Of a stretch of 64,000 nucleotides of DNA, positions 8,845-39,405 are shown piece after piece. Origin of the DNA: Malacoraja senta. Its lineage: Eukaryota. The notes beneath the pieces were generated by a model. That model ran no database searches. It was given only the letters and a program-made list of their open reading frames with translations, and had not been told where the DNA came from. A program made the position numbers and the translations under genes. How positions within the stretch are numbered: position 1 is the stretch's first letter; each line of letters starts with the position of its first letter. Where the stretch lies: assembly GCA_038087875.1 (NCBI GenBank), contig JAXLNO010005343.1, positions 62,001 to 126,000 of the forward strand, read 5' to 3'.

Positions 8845-9005
8845 GTACATGGCATCCCCATAAACCCTTTATACAGACTAAAATCTACATCTATTCAATG
8901 GTTCTTTAATGCGTGACTTTATTTCCATTTGCAATTAGCCCTGCTCCTGCGTTTAACCTTCTGGGGTGAAATATTCCTAATCGGGCCTGTTTTTCTTTCC
9001 TTTAG

Positions 9006-9326
9006 GTAATGGGAAAACTGCAGACAAAGTAACTCAAGTTCCTCAAGCAGTGAATGTCTCGACGGGCCAAAATGCTTCGTTTCACTGCTCTGTTCCCTTC
9101 TTTCGTGAAGGGCCCAGCGTAAGCGTACATTGGTGGAAACAGGGTGAAAATGTTTTTTTCATCCCAGACCCTGACGGGAGAACGGTTTCCGGCGTCGGTA
9201 CTAAATTCAGTGGCTTCCTGAAAATAGTCAATGTGAGCCGACAGGATGCCGGAGTATATTATTGTACCATCACCCTCTGTGGCACTTTAGTTGGCAACGG
9301 AACCGGGTCGACTTTAGTTGTGTTGG
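9006..9326 (+). CDS. Gene A exon 2: germline-joined V(J)-type Ig domain
   Basis: KVTQVP...NASFHC...VHWWKQ...[17 protein letters not shown]...[11 protein letters not shown]. Has the canonical B-strand Cys, C-strand Trp, DxGxYYC and a J-like GxGSTLxV. Strong acceptor, donor G|gtaagt, phase 1-1. Confidence 0.93.
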
Positions 9327-9994
9327 GTAAGTAGGTTTAAACGTGTAACGAATGCGATTTCGCGACTGTGATATTGCCCTGCAAGTAACGTGTTTTTTCA
9401 GATTTGAATCATTCATACAGCCAGATGAATACTATAAATATTGCAATTGGTAAATCATACCATAGATGGTCTGCATGCTGATATGTATAAACAATACGTT
9501 TTAGCGATATTAATCAAAACGTATCTTATGTATTGGAAGTTTATTTCCAAAGCACAGCATAACATTAGTACAATACAGGTACCATTGTAGTGCCCGTTGT
9601 GAATACGGAAAAGACATGTGCAACTGTCGTAGTGGGTGACCCCATATGATGTACCATTTCGCCTGCGTTAGATCAAGAGGACTGTTTGTTTTTATATTGG
9701 ACGTTAGAGTCATTCAATTGTAACCGTGGCCTCCACATGAATAAGTTTGGACGCTAATGTTGCGAACGTAAAATAGCGAAGAATCGGAACCCAAATTTCC
9801 CTCAACATTTCAAATGACCTGCATGGTGTTCCGCACCTACCACCTAAAATTCTCATATCACGACTAAATTACAATTTTCAGAATTGTTTAATCACAATGT
9901 TTGCAAATGATCGGGGAAATAGTCGGCAGCAGAACATTTACATGTTTGGCATTTACCCGAGACGGCAGTGTTGCAAGAATGTACCATCATGTTG

Positions 9995-10845: not shown

Positions 10846-11005
10846 ACGAGTAAACGTTATCTCTGATTTAAATTCGGGTATAAAGGTTCCGTTTACATTA
10901 TTATAAATGCACAACGAACGCGCGAATCCGCCTCACAGAAACCATTCACAGTCCGCGCACTCATTTTGTACTAATATAACCGTATCACTAACCTTCATTC
11001 CCTAG

Positions 11006-11311
11006 TTCCGCCAACTCCGTTGAAAATTTATTCTGGAATTCCCGAGAAGACGGAATCCTTCGTTATTCTCTGCGTGACATCTCCCTTTTACCCAAAGAAT
11101 ATCAGCTTCATGTGGTATCAAGATGGTAGAAAAACTACAACGGATTTGGTTAATAGCAACAAGCCCACCGCAGATGGATTGTATGAAGCTTCCAGCCGAT
11201 TATCAGTGACACAGTATGTCCCGAGCGGCACCGTTTACACCTGCCTTGTGAATCATGTAACCCACCGTGTTCCTGCAGCAGCCACTTACGTTGTCATCAA
11301 CTCCGACACAG
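11006..11311 (+). CDS. Gene A exon 3: C1-set Ig domain
   Basis: (V)PPTPLKIY...[21 protein letters not shown]...[12 protein letters not shown]...YTCLVNH shows the C1 hallmarks CxxxxFYPxxIxxxW, DGxY and YxCxVxH. Acceptor cattccctag, donor G|gtaaga, phase 1-1. Confidence 0.93.
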
Positions 11312-12699
11312 GTAAGACCGGTAAGATCTCTATTACCATAGAAAGATACGTAAAGTTGGAGATTTCACAAAATGTCGCATGATAGGAATTACTGTTATTC
11401 CTGGCCTGAAACTATAAACCTTGAAGATCCGTCTATTATAATCGCATCCGCTCGATTTCCATGTGGCTGCAAATGTTCTCATCAAGTACACGCAAAATTG
11501 TCTTTTGACAAATTCATTGGGAGCTACTACCTCCAGCATGTCAGGCGCTGCACTCCGAATCTCAAGAAAGCTATTCCCACAAATGTCCTCGATACGGTAT
11601 AACCGCTGGTTTCCCCTTTTCTTCAGCGGAAATAGATTGTGTTTAATTGCCCCAGTAAAGCATCTCCCGTGACCAATTGCTCTTCATTTCTGCCAAACGA
11701 GAAGACCCCAAACTTCTCCCAACTCTTCACTGAACCGGGCACAATGATCTCATCTATCATTCTAGCAAACAACCTGTGCATAGACCTAAATTAAAAAGTA
11801 GTGATTTTCAAGCATTTGCCACGGTATGGTGTCCCTTGCTTCATCCATGAGGGCTAAAAGTTCCACGATCTGCCTTAAATCTTTTATCAGCTTCCCAGAA
11901 TTGTGTAATATGTTTTCCTCTTTCCCGTATGCTTCCAAATTCCTCAAAATATAAGCATATCTTGGCTCATTTGTCCAGTCTAACAACGACCTCCTCACGT
12001 CTCCTGTTTTTTTTATGTAGGATAACAGCACTCCCGTAACAAACACAGAAACAATTCCCCGCCACCGCGAGGGTCAATTGTTTGATTCTAAACAAAATGC
12101 CGTGATCCCGATATCCGACTAATATATCTCGGTCTGCCGCTCTGTCTCTACTGCCGGATGAGTCAACGCAGAAGTGTAAGATGGATACATGAGCTAGTAT
12201 CCGCTCCTTGCCGAGAGGCCACGGAGCTGAAACGCTGTCTCTCATTCGCTGAACATGACATAACTTCCTACAGATCAGAAACGTTGCCAATAATTTAAAG
12301 CTAGAAATAAAGTAACACGCTGAAAATATCCTCATTGACATTCCTGAATTTTAAAGCGGATATCATTTGTGAGTCGGACAGACGGTTTGCTGTCTCCGAT
12401 TTAATCAGAAGTATCTCTCATATTGAACTTTCATTTTAATAAGAATACGCGAACACCAGTTCGTTTTTTAAAGCTGTTGTTCTCGTAGTAAAGTATGAAA
12501 ACTATTATTTCTCGCTTATAAGAATAGGTTCATAAAATGACGCCTGAAAGCATGTTTTATTTTTTGACATATAATATAGAACCGTACACCACAGGATCAG
12601 ACATTTCGTCCCGCACGTGATGCAAGTTAAAATAATGTCCTCTCCCTTTTGGTGATCTATTTCCTTACACACTCTGCATCTCAATGTACCTGTACGAAA

Positions 12700-15348: not shown

Positions 15349-15442
15349 GTACTAACATCGTCAATTGTGTCAGGATAATGTGCGGTTTAGTACTACTGCC
15401 TCTTCTCATTGCAACGTGTTGTATTGCAAGAAAAAAATAAAG
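15349..15442 (+). CDS. Gene A candidate TM exon [30 protein letters not shown]
   Basis: Phase-1 acceptor (catttcaatcttacag). Hydrophobic run with Arg at its N-terminal edge and basic stop-transfer RKK. In-frame TAA at 15438-15440, then a donor ag|gtaaag at 15443. Confidence 0.55.
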
Positions 15443-17308
15443 GTAAAGAATAATTTAACCCAATTAAGTATTTTGTTCAGAGGGCTATAGCTTTAGAAAG
15501 AGGGGCGCGTGATCTCTCTGTTCTTGGGCAAAATAGCTTCATTTTTCTTGTCATCACGGTCGACAAAGCCATTGTGGGCCGAGGGGCCTTTTCCTATGCT
15601 GTGTATTTATGTTTTATGTTACAACGAGTGGTCGCCCTATTCCTTCTGCGAAATTTCATTACCTTGCTTGAAAGTATTCATATTCGCCATTCCGCCCATT
15701 TTTAGTACACTAATATCCTACTGTAATGTTCTGTTCCCCTCAGTACTGAAGATCTCGTCCAATTATGTGTCACCCTTACTTCAGAAATCAGGTTTGATTC
15801 TGGTTCGAACAATCTGCAGTTCTGGAAGCAACACAACTGCGCCCATTGCTTTCTGTGAGCAGTTGCAGTTTAGTCTGCTTTCTTTCCCGCAGCCAGCCAT
15901 GAATCGATCTGAAACCTGTCACTAATTACGTATTCTCAGATCGTTTTTCGTGTGTCCTATGTCGCCAACCTATCTGCCATTCCTCTGGAAATCTAAGTTT
16001 ATATTTGTTTTCATTATCATAGCCATGCCTCTCCGTATTTGCTTACTGCCACGTCAAATTATATGAGTCCCAGCAATCGGGAGAGATTGCTAACTGGAGA
16101 TTCTATTTAGTTACCAGCGGCCTGGCTCTCGAAAAACACTGAGTAGAATTAAAAGGCTAGCGACGTCAGCATATTAATATCGATTCGGGATAAAGCCATG
16201 TATTTGCATATGATCGTCTCCATCAATCTATATTAAGCACTTTTGTTCATCGATCTATGAGAACCTCTTTTTTCGGGTGACAAAATGCCATTTTTGTAAC
16301 TTGAGAAGTAATTAGTATTATTAATTTACCAGATACCCAGAAGGAAGGAGAAATATATAATATTAATGGTATGTACTCAAAATCCATGGAATTGTTTCGG
16401 AAATCTAAAATAATATATTATACAAAATTAGCAGTCGAGCCGATTGGACAAAAATGAAGCATGAACCTAAAAAGAACTGTCAGTAGTGTGCGATGCATTT
16501 AATTGCCATCAGATCAATCTGAAGTAACATTTCACATTTACACGCCATGAAAGAAGTAAAGTTAAAATATCTGTGTTTGCCTTCAATACAACGGAAATTA
16601 GTTAGCAGTATCGTTGATGCCACTACCTCTCGGTAGCAGCCGTTCAAAGGGTTTTGTATGTTAACACGAATGCTAGATGAAAACCCATCTTGCCAAGATG
16701 ACATATTGCACTCACTTTTAAAAATTCGTGCCTCTTGTCAACAAAATGTCTAAGGTCTTTTAAATGCTCGTACCTCCACAGCAAAATCATGAATGTCTAC
16801 CACGGATGCATATCTACCGTTTTCGCTTGGCACGCACTGCATGCCCAGTAATTACCATGTGAAGCCTCGAAGACGGACGTCCAATCAGTACAGAATAAAG
16901 CTGCCCTCTATTTGCGCCTAGAGCGAAACCCCAATGCACCCGCAATCATCTCAGTGGACCTTCTCTGAACTGTGTCGTGTAACTTTCTAGCGGAGAGCGA
17001 CACTATCAGGCTCTAAAATGGATACAAACGAAAGTGTTCCTTTCTTTTAGTAAGCGCATTGAAACAGGACGTCTTTGCTGCCTTGCACAGACTGACAACC
17101 ACTTGGAAACAGGATTTTGATGTGAAATGAAATGAAAAATCGAGTTCACTATTATTTCCGTTCAATCAGTTGGCTGCAATTTGCTTCTTTGCGTTTGCAA
17201 ATGCTAAGATAAAGCAAATACGTTTACGAAGATAATATAGGTCATTTAGGGCTAGGAAGCCTTCCCCCGCCATATCCACACTGCGATTTATTTAGCTAAT
17301 CAGATCTA

Positions 17309-18906
17309 CAGTGCCCTCCATAATGTTTTGGACAAAGACCCATCACTCATTTATTTGCCGCTGTACTCCACAATTTGAGATTTGTAACAGAAAAAAAAAT
17401 CACATGTGGTTAAAGTGCACATTGTCAGATTTTAATAAAGTGCATTTTAATCATTTTTGTTTCACCGTGTAGGAATTACAGCAGTGTTTATACATAGTTC
17501 CCTCCCCCCATTACAGGGCACCATAATGAAAGTAGTCATGTTTAGTATTTTGTTGCATATCCTTTGCATGCAATGACTGCTTGAAGTCTGCGATTCATGG
17601 ACATCACCAGTTGCTGGGTGTCTTCTCTGGCGATGCCCTGCCAGGCCTGCATTACAGTTATCTCTAGCTTATGCTTGTTTTGGGGGCTAGTACCCATCAG
17701 TTTTCTCTTCAGCATATAAAAGACATGCTCAATTTGGTTCAGATCGGGTGATTGACTTGGCCACTCAAGAATTGACACATTTTTAGCTTTGAAAAACTGC
17801 TTAGTCGCTTTAGCAGTATGTTTGGGGTCATTGGATTGCTGTGAATGAACGCCGGCCAATGAGTTTTGATGCATTTGTTTGAAATTGAGCAGATAGGATG
17901 TGTCTATACACTTGAGAATTCATTATGCTACCACCATCAGCAGTTGTATCATCAATGAAGATAAGTGAGCCAATACCTTCAGCAGCCATATATGCCCAGG
18001 CCATAACACCCCCACCACCATGTTTCACAAATGAGGTGGTATGCATCAGATCTTGGGCAGTTCCTTCTCTCCTCCATACTTTGCTCTTGCCATCATTCGA
18101 ATATGTTAATCTTCGACTCATCTGTCCACAAGACCCATTTCCAGAACTGCGGTTGCTCTTTTAAGTACTTCTTGGCAAACTGTAACCTGGCCATCCTGTT
18201 TTTGCGGCTAACCAGTGGTTTGCATCTTGCAGTGTAGCCTCTGTATTTTTGTTCATGAAGGCTTCCGCGGAGAGTGGTCATTGACAAATCCACACCTGAC
18301 TCATGAAGAGTGTTTCTGATCTGTCGGACGGGTGTTTGGGGATTTTTCTTTATTATAGAGAAAATTCTTCTCTCACCAGCTTCCATGGCCTGTCTGTCCC
18401 TTTGCGATTATTAAGCTCAAAAGTGCACTCTTTCTTCTTAATGATGTTCTAAACAGTTGATTTTGGTAAGCCTACGGTTTGGCTGATGCCGCTAACATTT
18501 TAATTCGTGTTTCTCAGTCTCATAATGGCTTCTTTGACTTTCATTGGCACATTTTCGGTCCTCATGTTGATAAGCGGCAATAAACGTTTTCAAAGGTGAT
18601 GGAAAGACTGGAGGATAGACTAGATGCTGAGCACCCCCTTAAACACACCTGAGCAATTGCAAACGCCTGTGAAGCCATGTGTCCCAAACATTATGGTGCC
18701 ATGAAATGGGGGGACTATGTTTAAACCCAGCTGTAATTTCTACATGGTGAAACCAAAATGTATAAAAATGGCCTTTAATAAAACCTGACAATATGCACTT
18801 TAACCACACGTGATTTTTTTTTAAATTACAAATCTCAAATTGTGCAGTACAGAGGCAAATAAATAAATGATGGGTCTTTGTCTCAAACATTAAGGGGGGG
18901 GCACTA
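17309..18906 (-). mobile_element. Tc1/mariner DNA transposon, near full length, defective; long IR/DR-type TIRs
   Basis: ~220-bp inverted repeats at 17309-~17528 and ~18682-18906, with TA to the left. The transposase is split over three frames (18386-17542): TDESK, QQSNDPKH (catalytic D replaced by S) and SPDLNQIEH. Confidence 0.92.
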
Positions 18907-19097
18907 TTACTCGCTTTTTTTTTGGTACTGTTGGAGCATCAGAAGTGATAGACACTTTTATTCATGTAATAGGCCGTCGAATCTGTTTTAGAGCATGATT
19001 GTGTCGTTCTCCGCAAGAATCAATTCACCTCTGTTTCGAAGATGCATACTTTCCTCGTTTAGTCTATGGAATGTGCAGGTGAAGCGAGTGTGCCTTA

Positions 19098-19238
19098 TTT
19101 TTAGTTTAGATTAGTTTCGTTTAGTTTCGTTTAGTTTCGTTTAGTTTAGTTTAGTTTAGATTAGTTGCGTTTAGTTTAGTTTAGTTTAGATGCGTTTAGT
19201 TTAGTTTAGTTTAGTTTAGTTTAGTTTAGATTAGTTTA
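19098..19238 (+). repeat. (TTTAG)n pentanucleotide microsatellite with TTTCG/GATTA variants, tail of a minus-strand SINE
   Basis: Directly visible tandem array abutting the SINE sequence gatacaacgcagaaaaaggccc. Confidence 0.9.
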
Positions 19239-19754
19239 GAGATACAACGCAGAAAAAGGCCCTTTGGCCCACCGAGTCCATGCCGACCAACGATGCCCGC
19301 ACACTTACCATATCCTACACAAAGTAGGAACAGTTTTACAATTATACCAAGCCAATTAACCTACAAACCTGTACGTCTTTGGACTGTGGCACCCGGTCTC
19401 GGGCGCTGTGTGGCAGCAACTCTAACGTTGCGCCAACGTGCCGCCCCAAATCTGCGCAAAATCTGAGCAAATCCAGGATAATTCCAATGCCGGTCAATCA
19501 AGAAAGGACAGGTACACATATATGAACGCATTCAGGCTAGATATCGGCACCTCCGCCCTTCGGCATGCTTCGGCGTACAATAAGGTGTTGATTGGCCTTA
19601 GCTCTGCGTTTACCATTGCCAACCTAACGATTGACGGCTTTACTTATTTAATACATATATCATCTCCTGACAGAAAATATAAAGTGGAGAAAAAAGTCAA
19701 ATTCTTGTCCTTGCACATAATGTATCAAAAATATTTATATGGCAAAGTTAGACA

Positions 19755-20104
19755 CAAGATGCTGGAGAAACTCAGCGGGTCAGGCAGCATCTCTGGAGAA
19801 AATGGATGTGACGTTTCGGGTCCGGACCCTTCTTCAGACTGAATCCAGCAGGGAGAGTAGAGGGAAAAATGGAAAGCGAAGTAAATTAGGAAAAGTCGGG
19901 GCCAGCAACAGATGACCTCAGGTAAACTGGTTTCCCGATGGGCTGACTGTTGGCCAGGGGCGGGTGTGAGTCGAAGAGGGATACATAGTCGAATTCGGTA
20001 AACAACCTCTAGTGGAGGACGGGGGGGGGGTGAGGAGAGAAGGGGAGGGAGGTGTAGCGAGGTGTTGACGGCCTTGATTTGTCCTGTTTTTTCTTCGCCT
20101 CCAG
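19755..20104 (-). mobile_element. Penelope-like terminal repeat/fragment running into the gap
   Basis: Same PLE terminal motif as at ~10018-10110. Confidence 0.6.
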
Positions 20105-20302
20105 NNNNNNNNNNNNNNNNNNNNNNNNNNNNNNNNNNNNNNNNNNNNNNNNNNNNNNNNNNNNNNNNNNNNNNNNNNNNNNNNNNNNNNNNNNNNNNNN
20201 NNNNNNNNNNNNNNNNNNNNNNNNNNNNNNNNNNNNNNNNNNNNNNNNNNNNNNNNNNNNNNNNNNNNNNNNNNNNNNNNNNNNNNNNNNNNNNNNNNNN
20301 NN
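20105..20302. other. Assembly gap (N run)
   Basis: Run of N characters. Confidence 0.99.
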
Positions 20303-20680
20303 ACGAGTATGACTGTCCTCTTTTGGGAGGACGCCTGTGCCTGACTTAGTTTAACGTGGGGAGACTCGTGCACAGACAGCCACCACACGGTTCTTGACAG
20401 ATCTGGGTCAGGATCCATTGCCATAGAGTCCAAGACGACCGTAGACTCTTTTCTGCTGCAGCTTTCATCCGCCTTCCCAGCCGTTGTGACGCTCCACTAA
20501 AGTCAGCCATCATCCTCTGCCTTTTCCACCGTTGCGGTCTTGGTTGGATTGCTCCTTGTCAGGGACCTTCCCCTCGACCTTACCGCCATGGGTGGCCCAA
20601 CCATGAGCATAGCTCCAGACGGCATCGCTCTTAGGATCTCAGGACCACACAAGCGTCTCCGCCACGACAAGGTAACAATC
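20303..20680 (+). mobile_element. Probable RTE-like retrotransposon 5' region fragment
   Basis: ...ctccagacggcatcgctcttaggatc...ccgccacgacaaggtaacaatcc recalls vertebrate RTE 5' sequence. Recognition from memory only. Confidence 0.35.
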
Positions 20681-22249
20681 CACATACACACACTCTCACA
20701 CAAACACACACACACACACAATCAGACTTAAGAAGGGTCCCGACCCCAAGAGTCACCTGTCCATTTTCGTCAGAATGCTGCCTGACCCTCTGACTCACTC
20801 GAGCACTTTGTGTCTCTTTGGTATAAACCAGTATATGCCGTTCATTTATGTTACTTTTAGTTGGCAGCCTGTTGTAATAATCTCTGATTTTGCGATGCTC
20901 TCGTGGCTGCATGAGATTTAAAGCAACTTAAAAAATGAACTAATATTCTTTCCATTAAATTTTCATCTCGTAGACCAAGCAGAAACCAATGCATGCTAAA
21001 GTGATCTACGCTCCGTTCGTTACGGTAGGAAACACGAAAAGAGAGCAAACAATTGTACGGATAATGACACTGACAGCTAATAAAGCAAATGCGAGGTGCA
21101 GATGTTATCTATTCAGAATGGAATCCCAAGTAGTGTCCGTGCTCAAATTGATGTCTTGTTATTTGTGTGATTACTTATCAAGTCCATTCTCTGACAAAAA
21201 GCATCAACAACCCTCAGAGAAAGGGCGAGATGTACTATATTACAAGCATGGCGCACTGATTTTACGTCAAAATTCCTAACCAACATTTCACCTTCAACAC
21301 TTGGGGTGAAATGGGTTGCAAATGATTGCCCAAGTTATGTTCAAGAAAGTTTCGGTGTCCATGCGTTTAGCAACTGTGCTCCCTGTCTTTGCATATGTTT
21401 GGTAAAGGTAGGCACCTAAATTATAATTTCTGTAAAATAATATGCACTTTCATGCGTGTGTTTACCGCATTCTTTCCAGTCGCTTTGCAATCGCTGAATG
21501 TTTGAAGTGTACGGACAGATTAAAAACAAACATGATCAGAAATGTGAAAACTGTACATCATATGAATAAAAATCGATACGGTCAGAGACGAAACCAATCC
21601 GTCTTGACTCGGTTGGGGAAAAATAAACATAGTTTAGTTTAATTTAATATTGTCACATATATAGTGGAACGCCTTTTGTTGCATGCTATCAGTCAAAGAA
21701 AAGACTATACATGAGTATTATCAAGCCGTCCACAGTGTACCATTAAAGGATAACAAACTACAAATATCATTAAATGGGAAGGGCTGGAACGTTGGGATTC
21801 CGAAATCTGTAATATTGTAAGGGTCGTTGTGCACGGAATAAATGCTCCGCGGGTATGGCTGGATCCGTAAAATCGGTAATAAAGTAAGCATATCAATTTC
21901 TTGGCCTTATTTCAGAACAGCAGGAGAGTAGAGAAGCACAGGTGTTCATGCAAGTACAGAAGCAGTGAATAGGAAGTGGAGGGTTAAAGGACTAAAGCAG
22001 AGACTGGCGATACGGTGTGTAGCCAACCGAAAGACAAAGCAATTGATAATAATATGATCAAACTCTATTCCTTAAAGATATAGAAGAAACAATGAACGGC
22101 AGATGTTGGTTTAACAAGGAAGACAAAATGCTTGAGTATATCAGCGGGCCGGATAGCATTCCTGGAAAACTTGTGATAGGTGACGCTTCAGGTCAAGACC
22201 CTTCAGATTAATGACGTTTCGGGTCGGGACCCTTTCACCTGGAATATCT

Positions 22250-27130: not shown

Positions 27131-28039
27131 GATTGAACCCGGTTCTCTGGCGCAGTGAAGCAGCAACTCTACCGCTGCGCCACCGCGCTGCCTCTGTTGT
27201 TTACGATTGAAGTAAATTGTTGAGTAAACAGCTAAACATATATAGCTCTAGGTGACTGCCATAGACAACTCCTGAAATGATATCCAGATTTTAAATAGTC
27301 AGTGGACCAATTTGTGAAATAAAATAACTGTCACCATCTACCCCCACAAACACCCTACCCATAACTTTACATCTCACCCCACACGCTTAAATCGCCTGCC
27401 TGTGCACGCACGGCATACAAAAAAACGCGCGCACACTATTTAAGAGAGAATCAAGTCAAGAGAGCAACTTAAGAGTGACATGGGAGTGACCAACCAATTT
27501 TGCCTGGAATTCAATTCCTTTCCCTTTAATGAAGCCTGAAACATATGCGTCTGCAGAATATGACTGCGCATCCGCTGTTAAGATCTGGGAATCATCAATT
27601 AGCATTATTGATGGCCTCAAACTGCGCTTCAAACATTGACAGTGAGCTATCAACCTGCTATGAGACACAAGACCGCAGGTACAAAACCATGCTGACTATC
27701 CCTAATCAGCCCGTCTGTCTAAAGTGCATATATTTTAACAGTAACTAGTCTACCACATATGTCGGCCTCACGGGTTTATAGTTCCCAGGGGTGGGTGGGG
27801 GGGGCAATGACTTCATTGGAGGAAAGAAGAGGATACTTTATTGCCTTCCATCACAGTGAGGAACGTGGTGGAGCCGCTGTGGTGGATGTTTATGTTAATT
27901 TTTATGTAGTTGTGTCTTGTTGCTTTTTTTGGTATGACTGTATGGCAATTCAAATTCTCTGTATGTTGAAAAACATGTTTAGCTAATAAATTACATGAGT
28001 TACGAGTTGAGAGTTATTAGCTTCCTACTGTGTCCTCTG

Positions 28040-29810
28040 TAAAGATCTGATCAAGCCTGGGAGATTTGTCTACCTTCACACAACGTAGGACGTCCAGTAC
28101 TCCATCGACCGTAATACCGACTTTCCTCAAGATCCTTCCATTAACTGTCCCAAATTCTGAGATGCCTCCGTCTTTTTCCATAGCAAAGCCTCAGTTTCTC
28201 TCATTGTCTAAACTTCCTCACACCCAGGTGCCTTGTCTTTCACTCTAACCTGAATGTGCCTGCCCAGAACTCTTGTCATCATACTTTTTAAAGTATCCCA
28301 CTTTTCAAATGCTTCGTTCCCAGCAATTATACTAGTGCAATCAACTTAAGCTACTCCTTGACCAATACGATCAAAGTAGGCCCTGACCCAAATAGGTAAT
28401 TTAACGAGCGCGACGGCCCTATCTCTATCCTTAGCTATCTTTAAACTATCTTTAAACTAATTGAACAGCAGTCAATGGTCGCAGAAGGCTCACCCAAAGA
28501 ACGCATCAGTCACATGCTCTTCCCAATTTCTTAAGAGTAGATCAAGCTCTGCCCTCTACCATGTCGGGCCCTCTGCATGTTGCCTGAGGAAACGTTCCTG
28601 AACACATTTGACACATTCCACCCCACCTAAGCAGTCCCAGTGTATGTTTGAAAGTTAAAATCACCGACCATGATAACCTTATTAGTTTTGCAGCTGCCTG
28701 CAATGCCGGGGCATATTTGATCTTCTAATTCCTGTTAACTATTTGTGAGTCACAACAAGGTGATAATCCCCTTTTTTATGTCTCCGCTCTTCCCATATAG
28801 TCTCACTGGATGAACTATCAGTAATGTTATCTCGGACTAATGCCATGACATTCTCCTTAATCAATAAAGCAACAGCCCCTCCTCTTTTACCCCCAGACCT
28901 ATCTCTCCTGCAGCACCTGAATCCTGGAACATTAAGTTGCCAGTCCTGCCCCTCTGTTAGCCAGGTTTCCTTAATGGCTACGGCATTCCAGTCGCACAGA
29001 CCTATCCACACCCAGAGTTCATCTGACTTATCAGTAAGGCCTCTCGCATTAAAATAAGTCCAATTCAATCCAACAGTCCTTCCTCGCTCCCAACTGTAAT
29101 CCTTTCTATTCTGTCCTCTGACCTTATTTCATCACCATGCATACGCGTTCCAGCCTCTCATCTGTCTCTGTCTTGCTTCGGATCCCACCCCCTTCCAATC
29201 TAAATCAAACCCTTTAAGGGATTCCCGTTTCTCCTTAAAAGTATGCCAATAAGGTTGGACACCCCGACCTGAGAAAAAAGACTGGCAATGCAACTGATTT
29301 CCTAACCCCCCCGCCCCCTAAGGCCACCCCTCAACCTCTTGCGCTCCAAGGAAAACAGTCGCAGCCTATCGAGTCTCTCCTTAGAACGCAAGCCCTGCAT
29401 CATGGTAACATTCTTTTGAATCTTCTCTGAAAACTCTAGCTTAACTATTTCATTCCTACAGTATGTCAACCATAATTGCACAGAAAACTCCAGGTGCGGT
29501 CTCACCAACATATTGTACATCTGTAATATAGCATCCTAAACACAATGCCCTGATCAATGACGGTAAACATTCCAACAACTTCCTCACACACACTGTCACT
29601 GTGTCGCCACCTTCAGAGAGCGATGTTCTTCTACACCCTAGGTCGCTCCGCAAAATTTCCAAGATTTTGCCATTCGCAATATATATCCCTCCCTGATATA
29701 AACACATCAATTTGGAATTTTCTGAGTTACCTTCCACCGTTGATTGTATTGCGACTCTCCCAATTGATCTAGATCCTGCTGTAAACTCAGACAATCATCC
29801 TCACTGTCTA
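28040..29810 (-). mobile_element. Degraded CR1 with endonuclease and C-terminal remnants
   Basis: YFNARGL...AIKETWL...CRRDRSGGKRGGAVALLIKE (28739-29068) and LVRPHLEF (29302-29520). Confidence 0.8.
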
Positions 29811-30497
29811 CAATGCCATCAGTTATCGTGCCATTCGTAAATGTACCCTATGCCACCTACATTCTCTTCCACGACGTTCAAAAAACGGGGGAAACCAGCA
29901 CTGATCCGTGTTGCGCCAATTGTTTACTGACCAATACATTTTGAAAGTTACCATCTACTAACTTCTTCCACACGGTCAGTTTTAGAAACATAGAAACATA
30001 GAAAATAGTTGGAGGAGGAGGTCATTTGGCCCTTCAAGCCTGCACCACCATTCATTGTGATCATGGCTGATCATCCATAATCAGTAACCCGTGCCTGCCT
30101 TCTCCCCATATCCCTTGATTTCGCAAGCCCATAGAGCTTTATCTAATTCTTCAACTATCAAACGATCAACATTGGTAAATGATGCAGGTGAGCCCTTCAG
30201 CAACTATTTCCACGCAGGAACATTAAAAAATTGTTCACATCGTCTGAGATAGCACGGACAATGTGTGTGGCTAGTCACTAATGCGCAGTCTTATGTTTAG
30301 CCAACCAGAGCAGTGATAAATGAATCAATGTGTTCTTTCGCAGAAGGAAATATATTAATATAATAACATTTTTCATATTAGTAAAGGCATTTGTTTTTTT
30401 GCTATCATTTATAATGTCCATTACTGGCGGTGGTGGTGTATTTTTGGAAATATGTTGATGGATGTAATAATTAAAACAACTTGCTGATAACTTTCAG

Positions 30498-30608
30498 ACA
30501 ATTCAATTCCAATGTGATCCAAAGTTAACATATACTACTCTAAACATCACTGGTCTAGAGATATCTACTAAATCCAGATACTTTGAAGAAAGCACGATAT
30601 ATGCCCAG
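30498..30608 (+). CDS. Orphan cytoplasmic ITIM exon TIQFQCDPKLTYTTLNITGLEISTKSRYFEESTIYAQ (probably gene A)
   Basis: Acceptor gataactttcag, open 111-nt phase 0-0 frame, perfect donor CAG|gtaagt. It contains LTYTTL and ends in TIYAQ|. The Tyr-Tyr spacing of 23 aa and the YxQ| junction match gene B exon 39319-39405. Confidence 0.7.
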
Positions 30609-30696
30609 GTAAGTGTAACAAGAGCCTATTAATGGAACTTCACGAATCAAAGATGAATTCATGTTGACCAATTTTCTTTGTACGGTGTCTGTCGTT

Positions 30697-33420
30697 ACAT
30701 AGATACATAGATACATAGAAAATAGGTGCAGGAATAGGCCATTCGGCCCTTCGCGCCAGCACCGCTGTTCACTGATCATCCACAATCAGTTCTCCGTTCG
30801 TGCCTCCTCCCCATATCCCTTGATTACACGTCCTAAGAGTTCAATCCAACTCTCTTTTGAATGCATGCAGTATGCAGTGAATCGGCCCCCACTGCCTTCT
30901 GAGACAGAGCATTCCACAAATTCACAGCCCCATGGGTGAAAAAGCTTTTCCGCATCTCAGTTCAAAATGGCCTACCCCTTATTCTTAAATTGTGGCCCCT
31001 GGTTCTGGACTCCCCCCAACATCGGGAACATGTTTCTTGCATCTAGCGTGTCCAATCCGTTAATAATTGTATACGTTTCTAGACGATACCCTCTCATCCT
31101 TCTAAATTCCAGAGAATACATGCCCAGTAGCTCCATTCTTTCATCACATGGCAGTCACGCCATCTGTTAACATTGTGAACCTATGCTGCATTCCCTCAAT
31201 AGAAAGAATGTCCTTCCTCAAATTAGGAGACCGAAACTGCACACAATACTCCAGGTGTGGTCTCTCTAAGGTCCTGTACAACTGCAGAACGACCTCTTTG
31301 CTCCTATACTCAACTCCTCTCGTTATGAAGGCCAACATGCCATTAGATGTATTCACTGCCTGCTGTACCTGCATGCTTACCTATAGTGACTGATGAACAA
31401 GGACCCCCAGGTCCAGTTGTACTTCCGCTTTTCCTAACCTGACACCATTCAGATAATAATCTGCCTTCCTGTTCTTGCCACCAAAGTGGATAACCTCACA
31501 TTTATCCACATTATATTGCATTTGCCATGCTTCTGCCCACTCACCCAACCTGTCCAAGTCACCCCACGTCCTCATAGCATCCTCTTCACAGTTCGCACTG
31601 CCACCCAGACTTGTGTCATCTGCAAATTTGCTAATGTTACTTTTAATTCCTTCATCTAAGTCAATAATATATATTGTAAATAGCTGCGGTCCCAGCACCA
31701 AGCCTTGTGACTTCCCACTAGTCACTGCCTGCCATTCTAAAAGGCGCCCATTAATTCCTACTCTTTGTTTCCTGGCCGCCAACCAATTTTCTATCCATGT
31801 CAATACCCTACCCCGAATACCATGTGGTCTAATTTTGCCCACTAATCTCCTGTGTGGGACCTTATCAAAGGCATTCTGAAAGCCCAGGTACACTACATCC
31901 ACTGGCTCTTCCATGAACATTCTACTTGTTATATCCTCAAATAATTCCAGAAGATTAGTCAAGCATGATTTCCCCTTCGTAAATCCATGCTGACTTGGAA
32001 GGATCCTGTCACTGCTATCCAAATGCGCCGCTATTACGTATTTAGTAAATCGACTTCAGGATCTTCCCCACCACCGATGTCAGGCTAACGTCTATAATTC
32101 CATGATTTTTCTCTCCCTCCTTCTTAAAATGTGGGATAACATTAGCTACCCTTCAATCCACAGGATCTGACCCAGAATCTATAAAACATTGGATAATTAT
32201 CACCAATGCGTCCACAATTTCTAGAGCCACCTGCTCGGGTACCCTGGGATGCAGACCATCAGGCTCTGGGGATATATCAGCATTCAGTCCCATCAGTCTA
32301 CCCAACACCATTATCTGACTAATGTGAATTTCTTTCAGTTCCTCCATCACCGTAGGTGCTCTGTCCCCTATTGCATCCGGGAGATTGTTTGTGTCTTCCT
32401 TAGTGAAGACAGAACCAAAATATCTGTTCAACTCGTCTGCCATTTCCTTGTTCCCCATAATAAATTCACATGTTTCTGTCTTCAAGGGACCCACATTTGT
32501 CTGATATAATGTTTTCCTCTTCACATACCTAAAGATTGTTTTACTATCCTCCTTTATATTCTTGGCTAGCTTACCTTCGTACCTCATTTTTCTCCTAGTA
32601 TTGCCTTTTTAGTTACCTCCGTTGATCTTTAAAAGTTTCCCAATCCTTTGGCCTTCCGCTCATCTAAACTATGTTATACGTCTTATCTTTTATTTTTATA
32701 CTGTCCTTGACTTCCCTTGTCAAACATGGGCGCCTCTTACTCCCCTTAGAATCGTTCTTCCTCATTGGAATGAAAAGATCCTGCATTATCTGGATAATTC
32801 CCTGAAATACCTGCCATTGATGTTCCACTGTCATCCCTGCTAGGGTCCCTTTCCAGCCAACTTCGGCCAGCTCCTCCCTCATGCTTCCATAGTCCCCTTT
32901 CTTCAACTGCAATACTGACACTTCCAATTTTACCATCTCCCTCTCAAATTGCAGATTGAAACTTATCTTATTATGGTCACTACCTCGTAATGGTTCTTTT
33001 ATCTTGAGTTCCTTTATCAAATTCGGTTCATTACACAACACTAAATCCAGAATTGCCTTCTCCCTGGTTAGCTCCAGTACAAGCTGCTTTAAGAATCCAT
33101 CTCGGAGGTACTCTACAAATTCACTTTCTTGGGGTCCAGTGCCAACCTGATTTTCCCAGTCAACCTGCATGTTAAAATCTCCCATAACCACCGTAGCATT
33201 ACCTATTGTTACATGCCAATTTTAACTCCTGATGCAACTTGAACCCTATATCCAGGCTACTGTTTGGGGGCCTGTAGATAACTACCATTAGGGTATTTTT
33301 ACCCTTACAATTTCTCAGTTCTATCCACAATGTCTCTGCACCTTCTGATTCTATGTAACCCCTCGCAAGTGACTGAATGTCATTCCTTACGAACAGTGCT
33401 ACCCCACCCCCTCTGCCCAC
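30697..33420 (-). mobile_element. CR1 LINE ORF2 (endonuclease plus RT), frameshifted
   Basis: ORFs 32664-33191 (VMGDFN...ILDLVL), 32153-32587, 31381-32022 (QHGFTKGKSCLTNL...KFADDT) and 31144-31374. (atagatac)n tail at 30697-30722. Confidence 0.93.
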
Positions 33421-33444
33421 CCGTCTGTATTTTCGATAGGGACA

Positions 33445-34090
33445 TATCTTTCTATATATCTATATATTAGATCGAAACTATCATATTGACCACTTCCTAT
33501 CTGTGTTGTAATTAAATTTGCGCAAAAACGATCCCCCATAGCGCTGCGATTTTTCGGCACCTTACTCACCATTCTCCTCTGCTGCAAGACAAATAAGTTG
33601 TGTTCCGATCGGTGAAATAGCACAAAAGTTATGAAGGTTTTGAAGGTTACCCCTCCCCCACACCCTCCCCTCATCCACACCCACCCTCCCCACACCCACC
33701 CCAAACCCCCCTCTCCCACACACCCCCTCTCCCACACCCCCCTCCCCCACACACACCCCTCCCCCACCCCCATTCCCCACTCTCACCTCCCCCACACGCC
33801 CTCCCCACACACCCCTCCCCCACACCCCCCTCACACACACACCCCTCCACTACCCCACCCCCTCCACCACCACCCTCCCCAACCCCCCTCCCCAACCCCC
33901 CCCCAACCCCCTCCCACCCCCCTCCCCCACCCCCCCTCTCACACCAGCTACCTCGCCTACACACACAATCCCCCACAACCCCCCCCCCCCACCCCCACAC
34001 ACCCACCTCTACCACACACCCCCCCTCCCCCACACCGCCATTATACTCCCAATTTGTCAACCCCCACCCCGGCTACAAACAATAGATTGA
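33445..34090. repeat. Non-autonomous element (possibly Helitron-like) containing a ~420-bp C-rich low-complexity tract
   Basis: Starts tctatatatc...gaccacttcc. The tract at 33650-34070 is irregular CCCC/CACAC. The family assignment is a guess. Confidence 0.4.
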
Positions 34091-35047
34091 AATCGAAAAC
34101 ATATAGATAGAACAACCAAAATTGATTATTTTGCTCTGTCTTCGCTTCGATTATTTTGGATGGATTACATGGTCCTCGGCCAGGCTAGTATTTATTGATC
34201 ATTCCTAACAGCGATTGAGGAGATCTTAATGGCCGCATACTTGAACCTCTGCAATCTACATGCTACAATCTCGCGCTGCTCCGGGAGGCAGTCCTGAAAT
34301 GTAGACCCAATGAAGATGAAGGACTAATGATATACCATATGTCAGGGTGGTGTGTGACCTTGACAGGAACGTGCAGGTAGTAGTGTTTCCATACTGCCCT
34401 TCTAGCGTTGGAAGAAATGTGCGTAGGGCGATGGGCTGGTGCCACTGAGACGACCTTCTTTTTCCAGAATTATGCCAAGTTTCCTAAGAGTTACTGGAAC
34501 TCATTCAGACAAATATATATATTTTTTCATATACTTAACTTCTGCTTTGAAATGGAGGAAAGATTTCATGGTGTCAAATTGACTGAATTCGCGTTTATTG
34601 TCATTTGCACAAGTATGGCTAGGTACAAGTACAATGACAACCTTGCTCGCAGCAGCACCACCGGCACCAAGAATCAGGCAGCATACTACAACATGACATA
34701 CATACTTATACTTAAGTTATACGTAACTTCTGCTGGGCAATAGAAAGAATAAAGAAACGTGGCAGAAAACAAGTAATTAACGCAAAACCCACTTTTAAAA
34801 AAAATTATAGTTGTGCCATCATGTTTTATTGTTGAGGTAGAATTAGGATAGCAGGCTAACTAGGATTAAGAACCATATGGTTGTACGAAAGTGCCTGTAC
34901 CTGAACCTGGCGGCGTGGGATTTTAGGCCTCTGCGCTTCCTGCAGGATGGTAGAGGTGGGAGACGGCATCTCCCAGATGTTTGGGAGCCTGGACGATAGA
35001 TGCCACCATCTTGAGGAAATGCCTAATGTTGATGCTTTAAATGACAA

Positions 35048-35990
35048 TGGACAATAGACAATAGGTGCAGGAGTAAGCCATTAGGCCCTTCGAGCCAGCA
35101 CCGCTATTTAATGTGATCATGGCTGATCATCCCCAATCAGTACCCCGTTCCTGCTTTCTCCCCATATCCCCTGACTCCACTATCTTTAAGAGGCCTATCT
35201 AGCTCTCTCTTGAAAGTATCCAGAGAACCGGCCTCCACTGCCCTCTGAGGCAGAGAATATCACAGACTCACAACACTCTGTGCGAAGAAGTGTTTCCTCG
35301 TCTCCGTTCTAAATGGCTTACCCTTATTCTTAAACTGTGGCCCCTGGTTCTGGACTCCCCCAACACAAGGAATATGTTTCCTGCCTCTAGTGTGTCCACA
35401 CCCTTAATAATCTTATATGTTTCAATAAGATTCCCTCCCATCCTTCTAAACTCCAGAGTTTACAACCCCAGCCGCTTCATTCTCTCAGCATATGACAGTC
35501 CCGCCACCCCGGGAATTAACCTTGTAAACCTACGCTGCACTCCCTCAATAGCAAGAATGTCCTTCCTCAAATTAGGGGACCGAAACTGCACACAATACTC
35601 CAGGTGTGGTCTCACTAGGGCCCTATACAACTGATGAAGGACATCTTTGCTCCTGTACTCAACTCCTCTTGTTATGAAGGACAACATGCCATTCGCTTTC
35701 TTCTTTGCCTGCTGTACCTGCATGCTTACTTTCAGTGACTGATGAACAAGGACCCCCAGATCCCGTTGTACTTCCCCTTTTCCCAACTTGGCACAATTTA
35801 GATAATAATCTGCCTTCTTGTTTTTGCTACCAATGTGGATAACCTCACATTTATCCACATTAAACTGCATCTGCCATGCATCTGCCCACTCACCCAACCA
35901 GTCCAAGTTACCCTGCATTCTCATAGCATCCTCCTCACAGTTCACACTGCCACCCGGCTTTGTGTCATCTGCAAATTTGCTAATGTTATT
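35048..35990 (-). mobile_element. CR1 LINE 3' portion, young
   Basis: ORF 35460-35945 ...LVRPHLEYCVQFRSP...VQRRFTRLIPG, with an (atagaca)n tail. Confidence 0.92.
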
Positions 35991-37144
35991 TGAGTCCCTT
36001 CATCTAAATCATCGATGGTGAGGATGGTGGGGATGGTGGGGATGGTGAAGTACAGAGAGCTGGTTGATGACCAGTATGGATAAGATCGGCCAAATAGCAT
36101 GTTTTCTTTCTCAAAGATACACCATCTAATCTCATCTACTGAATTCCCTGACCCGACATGTGTCCCCCCTTTATATCGGTGACACCAAACCATAAAGATG
36201 AACCAATATAGCAAACACCCTACATGATAGAACAACAGTTATGGCCGGATTCAAAACAGGTTGTTAATTGTTCAGCTGCATATCAAAATGACAAAATAAA
36301 GTTAAATAATTCTACTGGACCGATTGGATATTTTGTTTGCAGACAGGTGCTGTGTGGCCTGCGGAGTTCCCCCGCCATTTCGTTTTTTGCTCAAGGTTTC
36401 AGCACGTGCAGTTTCTTGTGTCTCCATTGTGTGAAGATCTTTTTGTTTCCGCCTGTATAATTGTGAATCTGTAATACTGCCTCTTTGCTTGCCATTCATT
36501 GAGTACATCTATTTTTCCAACTAAAGTTTGGCAGTTATAGAAGGAACTTAAAGACCCACCCCGAATGCCTCTTGGAATATGACAGCAGCTTGGAACAGGA
36601 CGCTTTAACGGATGAGTGGAAAGATAACAGGTCAACATAGATCTAAAGAGGCAATTTAATTCCGAATTCATTAACTTAGTAGTTTAGTGGTAACTCAATT
36701 TCGTCGACGCAATGAACAGTAGGGCTAACGTACAACTGGGACTATTTAACGGCTTTGTCTGGCTTTAGCTGATTTACCTTTGGCGAGTGCATGACTATGT
36801 TTAAAGGGATAAGGAGAGTGCAGCAGCCTTTCGGTAGACATTCACCAAACATAACCTCTGTTATAAATACGTTAAGAGTGATAAGTTTATTCGGAGTGCA
36901 ACGTTTAGTTTATTTTAATTTCGTTTATTGTCACGTACATCTTTTCTGTCGCGTGCTATTCAATTAGCGGAAAGACTTACATGATTACAATCAAGCCGCC
37001 CACAGTGTACAGATACAGGATAAGGGGAGTAAAGTTTAGTGCAAGTCCAGTACAGTCCGATTAAAGATAGTCCGAGGGTCACCAATGAGGTAGACGATTG
37101 CACAGGACCGCTCGCTAGTTGGTGATAGGATCGTCTAGTTGCCT

Positions 37145-38235
37145 CATAGAGTCATAGAGAGTCATAGAGTGATACAGTGTGGAAACAGGCCCTTCGGCCC
37201 AACTTGCCCATGCCGGCCAACATGTCCCACCTACACAAGTCCCATCTGCCTGCGCTTGGTCCATATCCACCCACCCCCCCAAACTGTTCAATCCATGCAC
37301 CTGTCTAACTGTATCTTAAAAGATGGGATAGCCCCAACCTCAACTACTTCCTCTGGCAGCTTGTTCCATACACCCACCATCTTTTGTGTGAAAAAGTTAT
37401 AACTCGGATTCCTATTAAATCTTTTCCCCTTCACCTTGAACCTATGTACTCTGGTCCTCGATTCCACTACTCTGGGCAAGAGACTGTGTGCATCTACCCG
37501 ATCTATTCCTCTCATGATTTTGTACACCTCTATAAGATCACCCCTCACCCTCCTGCACTCCAAGGAATAGAGACCCAGCCTACTCAACCTCTCCCTATTG
37601 CTCACGCCCTCTAGTCCTGGCAATATCCTCGGAAATCTTTTCTGAACCCTTTCAAGCTGGACAATATATTTCCTATAACATGGTGCCCAGAAATGAACAA
37701 AATATTCTAAATGCCGTCTCACGAACGTGTTATACAACTATAACATGACCTCCCAACTTGAAGAAGGGTCTTGACTCGAAATGTCGCCCATTCCTTCTCT
37801 CCAGAGATACTGCCTGTCCCGTTGAGTTACTCCAGCTTTTCGTTTCTCTCTTCGGTTTCAACCAGTATCTGCAGCTCCTTTTTTACACACCTCTCTATAC
37901 TCAATACTCAGACTGATGAAGGCCAAAGTGCGAAAAGCTTATTTGACCACCTTATCTACATGCGACTCGACTTTCAAGGAACCATGCACCAGCACTCCTA
38001 GATCCATCTGCTCTACAACACTCCCCAGAGGTCAACCATTTACTGTGAGGTCCTGCCCTTGTTAGACGTCCCAAAATGCAACACCTCACACTTCTCCGTA
38101 TTCAATTCCAACAACCATTCCTCAGCCCACATGGTCATTCGATCCCGATCCTGCTGCAGTCTTTCACAACCATCTTTACTATCTGCAAAAGCACTCACCT
38201 TTGTATCATCAGCAAATTTGCTAATCATGCCCTGT
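37145..38235 (-). mobile_element. CR1 fragments of a second subfamily with an inserted PLE terminal repeat (~37760-37880)
   Basis: ORF 37288-37737 RRHLEYFVHFWAP...GDLIEVYKI and 38040-38282 ISKFADDTKV. Confidence 0.85.
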
Positions 38236-38860
38236 ATGTTCTCATCCAAATGACACGGTAACAGCTGGGAAGAAACTGTCACTAGATCTGGACGTATGCG
38301 TTTTCATACTTCTGTACCTCTTGCCTGGTGGGGGAGGGGAGAGGCCCTGTTGGGTTGAGACCCTGTCTTGATTATGCCGGTGACTTTGCGAGGCAGCGTG
38401 AAGTGGAGATGGAGTTAATGGCAGGGAGGTGGTTTTGCGTGACGGTTTGGGCTGGTCCACAATTCTCTGCTATTTTTTGCGGTCTTGGATGGAGCTATTC
38501 CCATATTCCTGTGATACATCCCGATAAAATGCTTCCAACGGTGCAGAGTCCTGAAAAGCGCTACATAAATAAAATCTATTATTATTATCTGTTCAGTTTT
38601 CTTAAAGTATGAGGAATACAGACAGGATAGATATTCAGAGTCTATTTCTTAATATTGTGGAGAATTATTTAACTGACGAGCGTATGCTTAGGATAAACAT
38701 GTATGCAGCATGCGGTCATGACCATGGACGAGCTGGCAAGGTGTTTGTGGAGGCAGACACAAATACAGCCTATCACTTGCATTTCCACAGGCACTTTCAT
38801 GGGGAAAACCTAGAGAGATAAGGATCTTATGCGGTTAGCTAGGATTTGCGGTGAAAGTCG

Positions 38861-38866
38861 TTTATT
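38861..38866 (-). terminator. Candidate polyadenylation signal of gene B
   Basis: AATAAA on the minus strand, ~235 nt downstream of the stop codon at 39101. Confidence 0.4.
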
Positions 38867-39100
38867 GTGCAGAACAGCTCTATGGTTGTACGATTCTATG
38901 ATCATTAATCGTTTTTCTGGTGACGTTAAGAAGGGTAACATTTATCAGAGTTGATCATCGCTCATTAAAATCCCCTGCTCACCGAGCATTGTCTTGTAAA
39001 TGATAATGTATGTGTGCGATCTTTGACTCAATGGTAATCAGGTTTATGAAATTTAAATATTGTTGGTTTTACAGTGAATGGACGTTTGCTGATTTCGCAG

Positions 39101-39223
39101 CTACTTAAAAATCATGATTCCTGCATACACTGTTTCATTATTCTTCGCCGTTCTTGGATCTTTCAGAGACGCGGTGAGATCCAGAGTTGCATAGGTCAGT
39201 TTATTTTGAGACATTTCCTTGAC
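39101..39223 (-). CDS. Gene B last coding exon VKEMSQNKLTYATLDLTASLKDPRTAKNNETVYAGIMIFK* (ITIM plus ITSM)
   Basis: Acceptor tgattatttttcgacag, phase 0, 123 nt ending in TAG. Contains LTYATL and TVYAGI. Confidence 0.9.
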   Translation of the reverse strand, partial: VKEMSQNKLTYATLDLTASLKDPRTAKNNETVYAGIMIFK

Positions 39224-39318: not shown

Positions 39319-39405
39319 CTGGCCATAGGTAATTTGTTTTTCCCGCCGTCTGTTTTTCTCAGTTTTCTTCTTTCCGCTGAAGTTCAAATCTGCGTACGTT
39401 GGATA
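39319..39405 (-). CDS. Gene B cytoplasmic exon YPTYADLNFSGKKKTEKNRRREKQITYGQ
   Basis: Acceptor atgttccctcag, donor CAG|gtaaaa, 87 nt, phase 0-0, 95-nt intron to the last exon. The ITIM ITYGQ|V is completed across the junction. Confidence 0.9.

Follow-up and report, generated by a model that had tools for sequence, protein, structure and literature searches.

The window, by which we mean the whole analysed stretch of 64,000 nucleotides, contains two receptor genes, gene A on the plus strand and gene B, whose tail exons lie on the minus strand. Between them lies a single tail exon on the plus strand, which we call the stranded exon. The features discussed here are the following.

8981-9331, plus strand: V exon of gene A
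10975-11379, plus strand: C1 exon of gene A
15349-15442, plus strand: TM exon of gene A, with an arginine in the helix and a run of seven A (A7) followed by TAA before the donor (..CCIARKK, stop)
16333-16368, plus strand: fossil juxtamembrane exon of gene A, 36 nt, compared with 44 nt in the intact A. radiata copy
19063-19510, plus strand: fossil first tyrosine-pair exon of gene A, split by a SINE
20974-21133, plus strand: fossil last exon of gene A, TKQKPMHAKVIYAPFV ... MRGADVIYSEWNPK, stop; frameshifted relative to the intact A. radiata copy
29983-30119, no strand assigned: high-copy SINE-like repeat with a depth in the millions, upstream bound of a unique island
30483-30497, plus strand: acceptor region of the stranded exon, gctgataactttcag; no differences in species B and C among those listed
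30498-30608, plus strand: stranded tail-module exon, 37 codons, phase 0-0, with the ITIM LTYTTL and a distal TIYAQ
30609-30693, plus strand: GTAAGT donor of the stranded exon and 85 nt of unique intron-like sequence
30694-33440, minus strand: LINE insertion with reverse transcriptase and endonuclease ORFs, at the position where relatives have a short terminal exon
39101-39223, minus strand: last exon of gene B, VKEMSQNKLTYATLDLTASLKDPRTAKNNETVYAGIMIFK, stop
39319-39405, minus strand: penultimate exon of gene B, the comparison exon of the preliminary description

The stranded exon and its surroundings

The preliminary description of this DNA had reported a 111-nt phase 0-0 exon with LTYTTL and a terminal TIYAQ followed by gtaagt, and direct reading of 30498-30608 bore this out. 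The exon begins behind an AG acceptor (...ctgataactttcag followed by ACA at 30498), is open over all of its 111 nt and ends in CAG, with the gtaagt donor after 30608. Its 37 codons without a stop translate to TIQFQCDPKLTYTTLNITGLEISTKSRYFEESTIYAQ. The two tyrosines are residues 12 and 35, with a spacing of 23. LTYTTL (residues 10-15) agrees with the ITIM consensus [ILVS]-x-Y-x-x-[LVI] and is the same in the related species B and C; homology suggests that this ITIM would be cytoplasmic. The ITSM consensus is T-x-Y-x-x-[VI], and TIYAQ stops at the splice site, with the +3 residue to come from elsewhere. Only two possible sources of this residue were found, namely read-through of the donor, which would supply a V, and an acceptor at the LINE edge, which would supply an I. 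Read-through of the donor gives VSVTRAY and then a stop, and no polyadenylation signal (AATAAA or ATTAAA) is present after the donor in 30609-30693.

The exon is carried by a unique island of 569 nt (30125-30693) between the SINE-like repeat and the LINE. The LINE is 2.75 kb long and starts 86 nt downstream of the donor; its ORFs, RVT_1 and Exo_endo_phos_2, run on the minus strand. It corresponds to the repeat of ~2.7 kb, a putative CR1, that had been placed ~90 nt downstream. The contigs of three species all break at 30694, the edge of the LINE.

No convincing next exon had been found previously, and a tblastn search with the last exon of gene B over 30609-39100 had been proposed. This search gave nothing credible, and together with 14 family tails and 30 terminal peptides as queries it yielded no credible further tail or terminal exon on the plus strand of this region. 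A second module or terminal exon is not present within ~100 nt downstream. Nor does the exon lie downstream of phase-compatible V, C1, TM and juxtamembrane exons: every V, C1 or TM exon found in the window belongs to gene A or gene B. Hydrophobic, TM-like matches at 23138 and 25173 were read as LINE-derived because they resemble repeat ORFs elsewhere in the window.

Tail modules of cartilaginous-fish V-C1 receptors

To obtain the receptor family, the C1 exon of gene A (10975-11379) was used as query against 1.84 billion representative proteins, which returned V-C1-TM receptors from sharks, rays, skates and one chimaera. Their naming at NCBI is inconsistent; the most frequent name marks them as SIRP-alpha-like ([quoted passage not shown]). 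In many members the tail ends in one to three tandem modules of ~37 residues each, followed by a short terminal peptide; within each module, xTYAxL is the proximal motif and xxYAQ/E the distal one. Profiles of first and of second tail modules, built on 25 family proteins from other species and with no window sequence included, were run against all 3260 six-frame segments of the window. Matches were found in three places: the last exon of gene B (E 6e-9), the stranded exon (E 6e-4) and the penultimate exon of gene B (E 7e-4). The tail relics of gene A scored far below these three.

The best single match of the stranded exon is residues 267-303 of P0177 from Heptranchias perlo (TKHIETDERLTYLTLNLTSTNKIAKPRRTEESTIYSE), with 46% identity in an ungapped alignment over 37/37 residues (E 2.7e-6, among 203 proteins). 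A further family protein, P0080, is 55% identical over 29 residues (residues 266-294). The layout also matches that of a live tail exon of A. radiata (L001 6630-6740). The tail to which that exon belongs (L001 6630-6920, plus strand) consists of a 37-codon phase 0-0 exon ending in YAE followed by gtaggt, an intron of ~100 nt and the terminal exon IKRVKTSQKLIYASEELNGF with its stop. With these three modules the stranded exon has in common the length of 37 residues, the phase 0-0, a T-x-Q start, a proximal LTYxxL and a distal S/T-T-x-Y-A-Q/E with the splice directly after it; it is thus a symmetric exon in the range of ~36-39 codons, spliced right after a distal Y-[AS]-[QE]. The difference lies in the context: the modules of the relatives follow TM and juxtamembrane exons and precede another module or a terminal exon, whereas the stranded exon stands alone between repeats. 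Judged by this homology, the stranded exon is a genuine tyrosine-pair tail module of 37 residues, of the type seen in cartilaginous-fish V-C1, SIRP-alpha-like receptors.

The intact A. radiata tail at L001 6630-6920 belongs to another family member, which is located upstream of the gene A orthologue, and its module reads RTGKENDEFCSYAALDLSKSKMVSNMKGTEERTTYAE. The same module is also found in L. erinacea at L002 9516-9608.

In AT-rich intergenic DNA an open frame with tyrosine motifs could also arise by chance: ~17% of random 37-codon frames are open, and motifs of the YxxL type are short. This reading is extremely improbable, given that the window-wide profile match of the exon (E 6e-4) is accompanied by only two others, both to real tail exons of gene B, and that the exon aligns to a shark family member without gaps at 46% identity over its full extent, with the same length, the same phases and the splice after Y-A-Q.

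The preliminary description had called the exon a paralogue of the penultimate exon of gene B (39405-39319, minus strand; YPTYADLNFSGKKKTEKNRRREKQITYGQ followed by gtaaaa). The identical tyrosine spacing and splice position on which the comparison drew are confirmed, since both exons have a spacing of 23 and both are spliced after Y-x-Q. In an ungapped alignment the two are 37% identical over 27 residues. The homology is real, but the claim is too narrow, because the last exon of gene B matches the stranded exon about equally well. Profiles of first and second modules do not discriminate either (18.2 vs 18.8 bits), which leaves the exon unassigned between these two positions, and the best match of all is a shark module. 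The paralogy is with the module type and not with one particular exon of gene B. The tail exons of gene B resemble the stranded exon in a KLTYxTLxxT core (last exon) and in tyrosine spacing and splice position (penultimate exon). They differ from it in that the identity is only 31-37%, that they lie on the opposite strand and that gene B is complete without the stranded exon. A skate orthologue of gene B was not found in the protein collection.

The tail of mammalian SIRP-alpha (SHPS-1/PTPNS1) carries paired motifs, xTYADL ... xEYASI, that are ~23-24 residues apart and repeated twice. The stranded exon resembles it in having paired tyrosine motifs, and the names given to the relatives at NCBI agree with this. 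The ectodomains are different, V-C1 in the fish family and V-C1-C1 in mammalian SIRP-alpha, and the stranded exon has a single pair; the comparison is one of likeness. The terms ITIM, SIRP and cytoplasmic tail do not occur in the UrIg paper.

Gene A, its decayed tail and a second tandem copy

Over 3335-24373, A. radiata L001 and L. erinacea L002 align collinearly with the window at ~90% identity. Downstream of its TM exon, gene A has the relics of a complete inhibitory tail of its own. The juxtamembrane exon has 36 nt instead of the 44 nt of the intact A. radiata copy (L001 49281-49325), which breaks the frame of gene A. The first tyrosine-pair exon is divided into SMECAGEASVPY (19063-19098) and AQNLSKSRIIPMPVNQERT (19454-19510) by a SINE (~19099-19453), and its second tyrosine is lost. 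The last exon begins with TKQKPMHAKVIYAPFV and ends in another frame with MRGADVIYSEWNPK and its own stop at 21133; the intact last exon of A. radiata (L001 55317-55484) is in one frame throughout. L. erinacea has the SINE, the loss of 8 nt and the frameshift as well, which shows that the lesions are old; of these, the frameshift of the last exon also occurs in copy 1 of A. radiata.

At 20105-20302 the assembly has a gap of 198 N, between the fossil first-pair and the fossil last exon. The ~590 bp around this gap have almost no counterpart in L. erinacea L002.

The TM exon ends in a run of A (15431-15437) that is A7 in the window and A6 in A. radiata copy 1 (L001 ~25480) and L. erinacea (L002 ~22900). 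With A6, both related skates read RKNK and then, out of frame, DQAET[DN]AC and a stop from the old last exon. This is the arrangement of the L. erinacea model P0002, in which the arginine-TM exon (..CCIARKNK, A6, phase 1) is spliced out of frame to the old last exon, giving DQAETDAC and a stop. The A7 of the window is a derived extra base or a homopolymer error. The stranded exon needs a partner ending in phase 0. An in-frame splice from gene A to it fails, as A7 gives a TAA before the donor and A6 gives phase 1; phase 0 is not found at the end of any gene A exon, which makes an in-frame junction with the stranded exon impossible for all of them. From its exons, gene A is a tailless, activating-type receptor, and its transcription unit would end near 21.2 kb.

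These observations bear on the proposal, made in the preliminary description, that the stranded exon is the inhibitory tail of gene A, which would then span >22 kb. Long-range splicing would in that case give gene A an inhibitory isoform. The exon does lie on the same strand and downstream of gene A, and with eight A instead of seven (A8) the TM exon would close in phase 0 (RKKIK) and fit the stranded exon. However, gene A has its own decayed tail at 16333-21133, with relics of the juxtamembrane, first-pair and last exons and a stop at 21133, and the model of the L. erinacea orthologue ends in the old last exon, joined out of frame to the TM exon (RKNK, then DQAETDAC and a stop). Moreover, the related species have A6 and not A8, the A7 of the window gives a TAA before the donor, and the stranded exon is far more diverged from the gene A modules than these are from their second-copy counterparts. 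We therefore consider this proposal very improbable, and in annotation the stranded exon should not be joined to gene A.

The second copy is found in A. radiata and L. erinacea, where a block matching window positions 27798-29304 is directly followed by a second tandem copy of the gene A unit at these positions:

L001 37511-55484: second tandem copy of the gene A unit, A. radiata
L002 36323-37778: second tandem copy of the gene A unit, L. erinacea

In A. radiata this copy has an uncharged TM (L001 47932-48069) and intact juxtamembrane, first-pair and last exons. The uncharged TM together with the intact tail makes it a likely inhibitory partner. In the NCBI model P0001 (493 aa, two C1 domains), V-C1 of copy 1 is fused to C1-TM-tail of copy 2. 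The second copy is absent from the window. The stranded exon was considered as the tail of a deleted second copy; this was rejected because its distance from gene A-type tail modules is much greater than the distance between the two tandem copies. By its sequence it looks like the leftover of an older, different family member.

The unique island 30125-30693 is not contained in the fetched sequences of A. radiata L001 (62 kb) and L. erinacea L002 (38 kb), in which only the flanking repeats match; its orthologue may lie beyond the ends of these fetched sequences. Weak peptide matches at L001 33627 and L002 29147 (..PRIYAQ) proved to lie within a SINE.

Activating KIR and Ly49 receptors arose from inhibitory homologues (Abi-Rached and Parham, 2005; PMC2213150). 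Gene A corresponds to the same route: a basic TM residue was gained, the ITIM tail was cut by a stop or frameshift, and the old tail is decaying downstream. The parallel covers the gene A relics at 16-21 kb; the stranded exon at 30.5 kb is a remnant apart from them and older. Gene A and the A. radiata second copy represent an inhibitory-to-activating conversion, as in primate KIR and rodent Ly49, in the oldest living lineage of jawed vertebrates.

Conservation and probable origin of the exon

Contigs of four runs were compared over 27800-31000. The contigs cross exon-intron borders, which indicates genomic DNA. The contig of run X1, from the same species, is identical across 30201-30694, which confirms the assembly there. 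It is the only same-species contig that covers the stranded exon at a likeness of at least 85%, so no close paralogue is seen in that run.

Species B differs from the window exon by four changes among the differences listed, all of them nonsynonymous (I2M, T18A, I22T and F29V). Among those listed for species C are I2M, T18A, E21K, I22S, S26C, F29V and I34V together with two synonymous changes; in addition, one base is lost and another gained at a distance of four bases, with no net effect on the frame. The preliminary description had made its case dependent on conservation of the frame in related species, and in species B and C the frame is indeed open, LTYTTL and T-x-YAQ are kept, and AG and GTAAGT are unchanged among the differences listed.

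This conservation can be compared with what drift alone would leave. The dN/dS ratio is 0.56 for the window against species C and about 0.26 for B against C, and the window lineage of the exon has acquired three to four nonsynonymous and no synonymous changes. Divergence of the exon does not differ from that of its flanks (Fisher p 0.83 and 0.21), and the contrast between synonymous and nonsynonymous changes in B and C is non-significant (p 0.10). In neutral simulations conditioned on an intact window copy, frame, splice dinucleotides and both motifs all survive in the two other species with a probability of ~0.05-0.16. The conservation of the exon fits neutral drift.

The exon contig of species C (2912 nt, run X5) has a depth of 40.8, compared with 7-9 in its neighbours (~4-6x), and its match to the window ends at 30485, 13 nt upstream of the exon. 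Because of the high depth and the end of the match it may be a paralogue; the contig may be multi-copy or rearranged.

Our preferred explanation, to which we give a probability of roughly 60%, is that the stranded exon is a remnant of the cytoplasmic tail of a third inhibitory receptor gene of the V-C1, SIRP-alpha-like type, distinct from genes A and B. A third family member had been proposed as one of two origins in the preliminary description, and this part of it agrees with all the evidence, although it was arrived at by exclusion and not by direct demonstration, as no orthologous intact gene was found. The module homology, the absent partner exons, the fossil tail that gene A has of its own and the presence of the exon in two related species support the remnant, as do the LINE close behind the donor, the equal divergence of exon and flanks, the lack of synonymous changes in the window lineage and the single same-species contig on the exon. 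Against it stand the frame, both motifs, the AG and the GTAAGT, which are all intact in the window and in two related species, the dN/dS of ~0.26 between B and C (p 0.10), and the fact that tail relics of gene A of comparable or greater age are visibly broken whereas the stranded exon is not.

An intact relative has one to three such 37-residue modules in tandem, each a phase 0-0 exon with an ITIM proximally and a T-x-Y-x-x motif distally, the last residue of the latter being supplied by the next exon. Phosphorylated tyrosines of ITIM receptors would recruit SH2-domain phosphatases. The V, C1, TM, juxtamembrane and terminal exons of the lost third gene would be gone from this strand, with the LINE now occupying the expected place of the terminal exon. 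Since there is no phase-compatible upstream exon and the LINE sits at the terminal-exon site, the stranded exon is most probably not translated; most probably it is silent and has simply not yet received a disabling mutation.

We regard it as doubtful that the exon is still used, as a live cassette or near-terminal exon of an unreconstructed transcript. Such a transcript could have a repeat-derived terminal exon, for which an acceptor-like ...gttacatag followed by ATA is available at the LINE edge and would give TIYAQ-I, or could start from an unrecognised promoter. The retention of frame, motifs and splice sites in three species, the dN/dS of ~0.26 between B and C, the neutral probability of only ~0.05-0.16 that both other species keep everything and the species C contig, whose depth of ~4-6x that of its neighbours may mean several copies in that species, argue for continued use. 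Against it, a phase-compatible upstream exon, a TM exon and a terminal exon are absent, the exon evolves no slower than its flanks, and the run searches with the stranded exon and the C1 exon of gene A returned no run on record as RNA. The copies of species B and C may also be paralogues in working genes, and would then be uninformative on the window locus.

A stronger version, in which the exon is kept by selection and still spliced, either in a hidden inhibitory isoform of gene A, with the homopolymer misread or varying by one base, or in a repeat-ended transcript, appears improbable to us. If true, one V-C1 ectodomain would serve an activating and an inhibitory receptor from a single cartilaginous-fish locus.

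Most likely, the stranded exon is an ordinary relic. As a leftover it matters little by itself, and more can be learned from its surroundings; it adds evidence for the repeated gain and loss of members in this receptor cluster.

The X1 contig of the island (30201-30694) has a depth of 8.7, compared with ~15 in neighbouring unique contigs, and the island contig is missing in the 2x run X2. This low depth could be due to an AT-rich coverage bias (GC 0.34 vs 0.45) or to a hemizygous segment.
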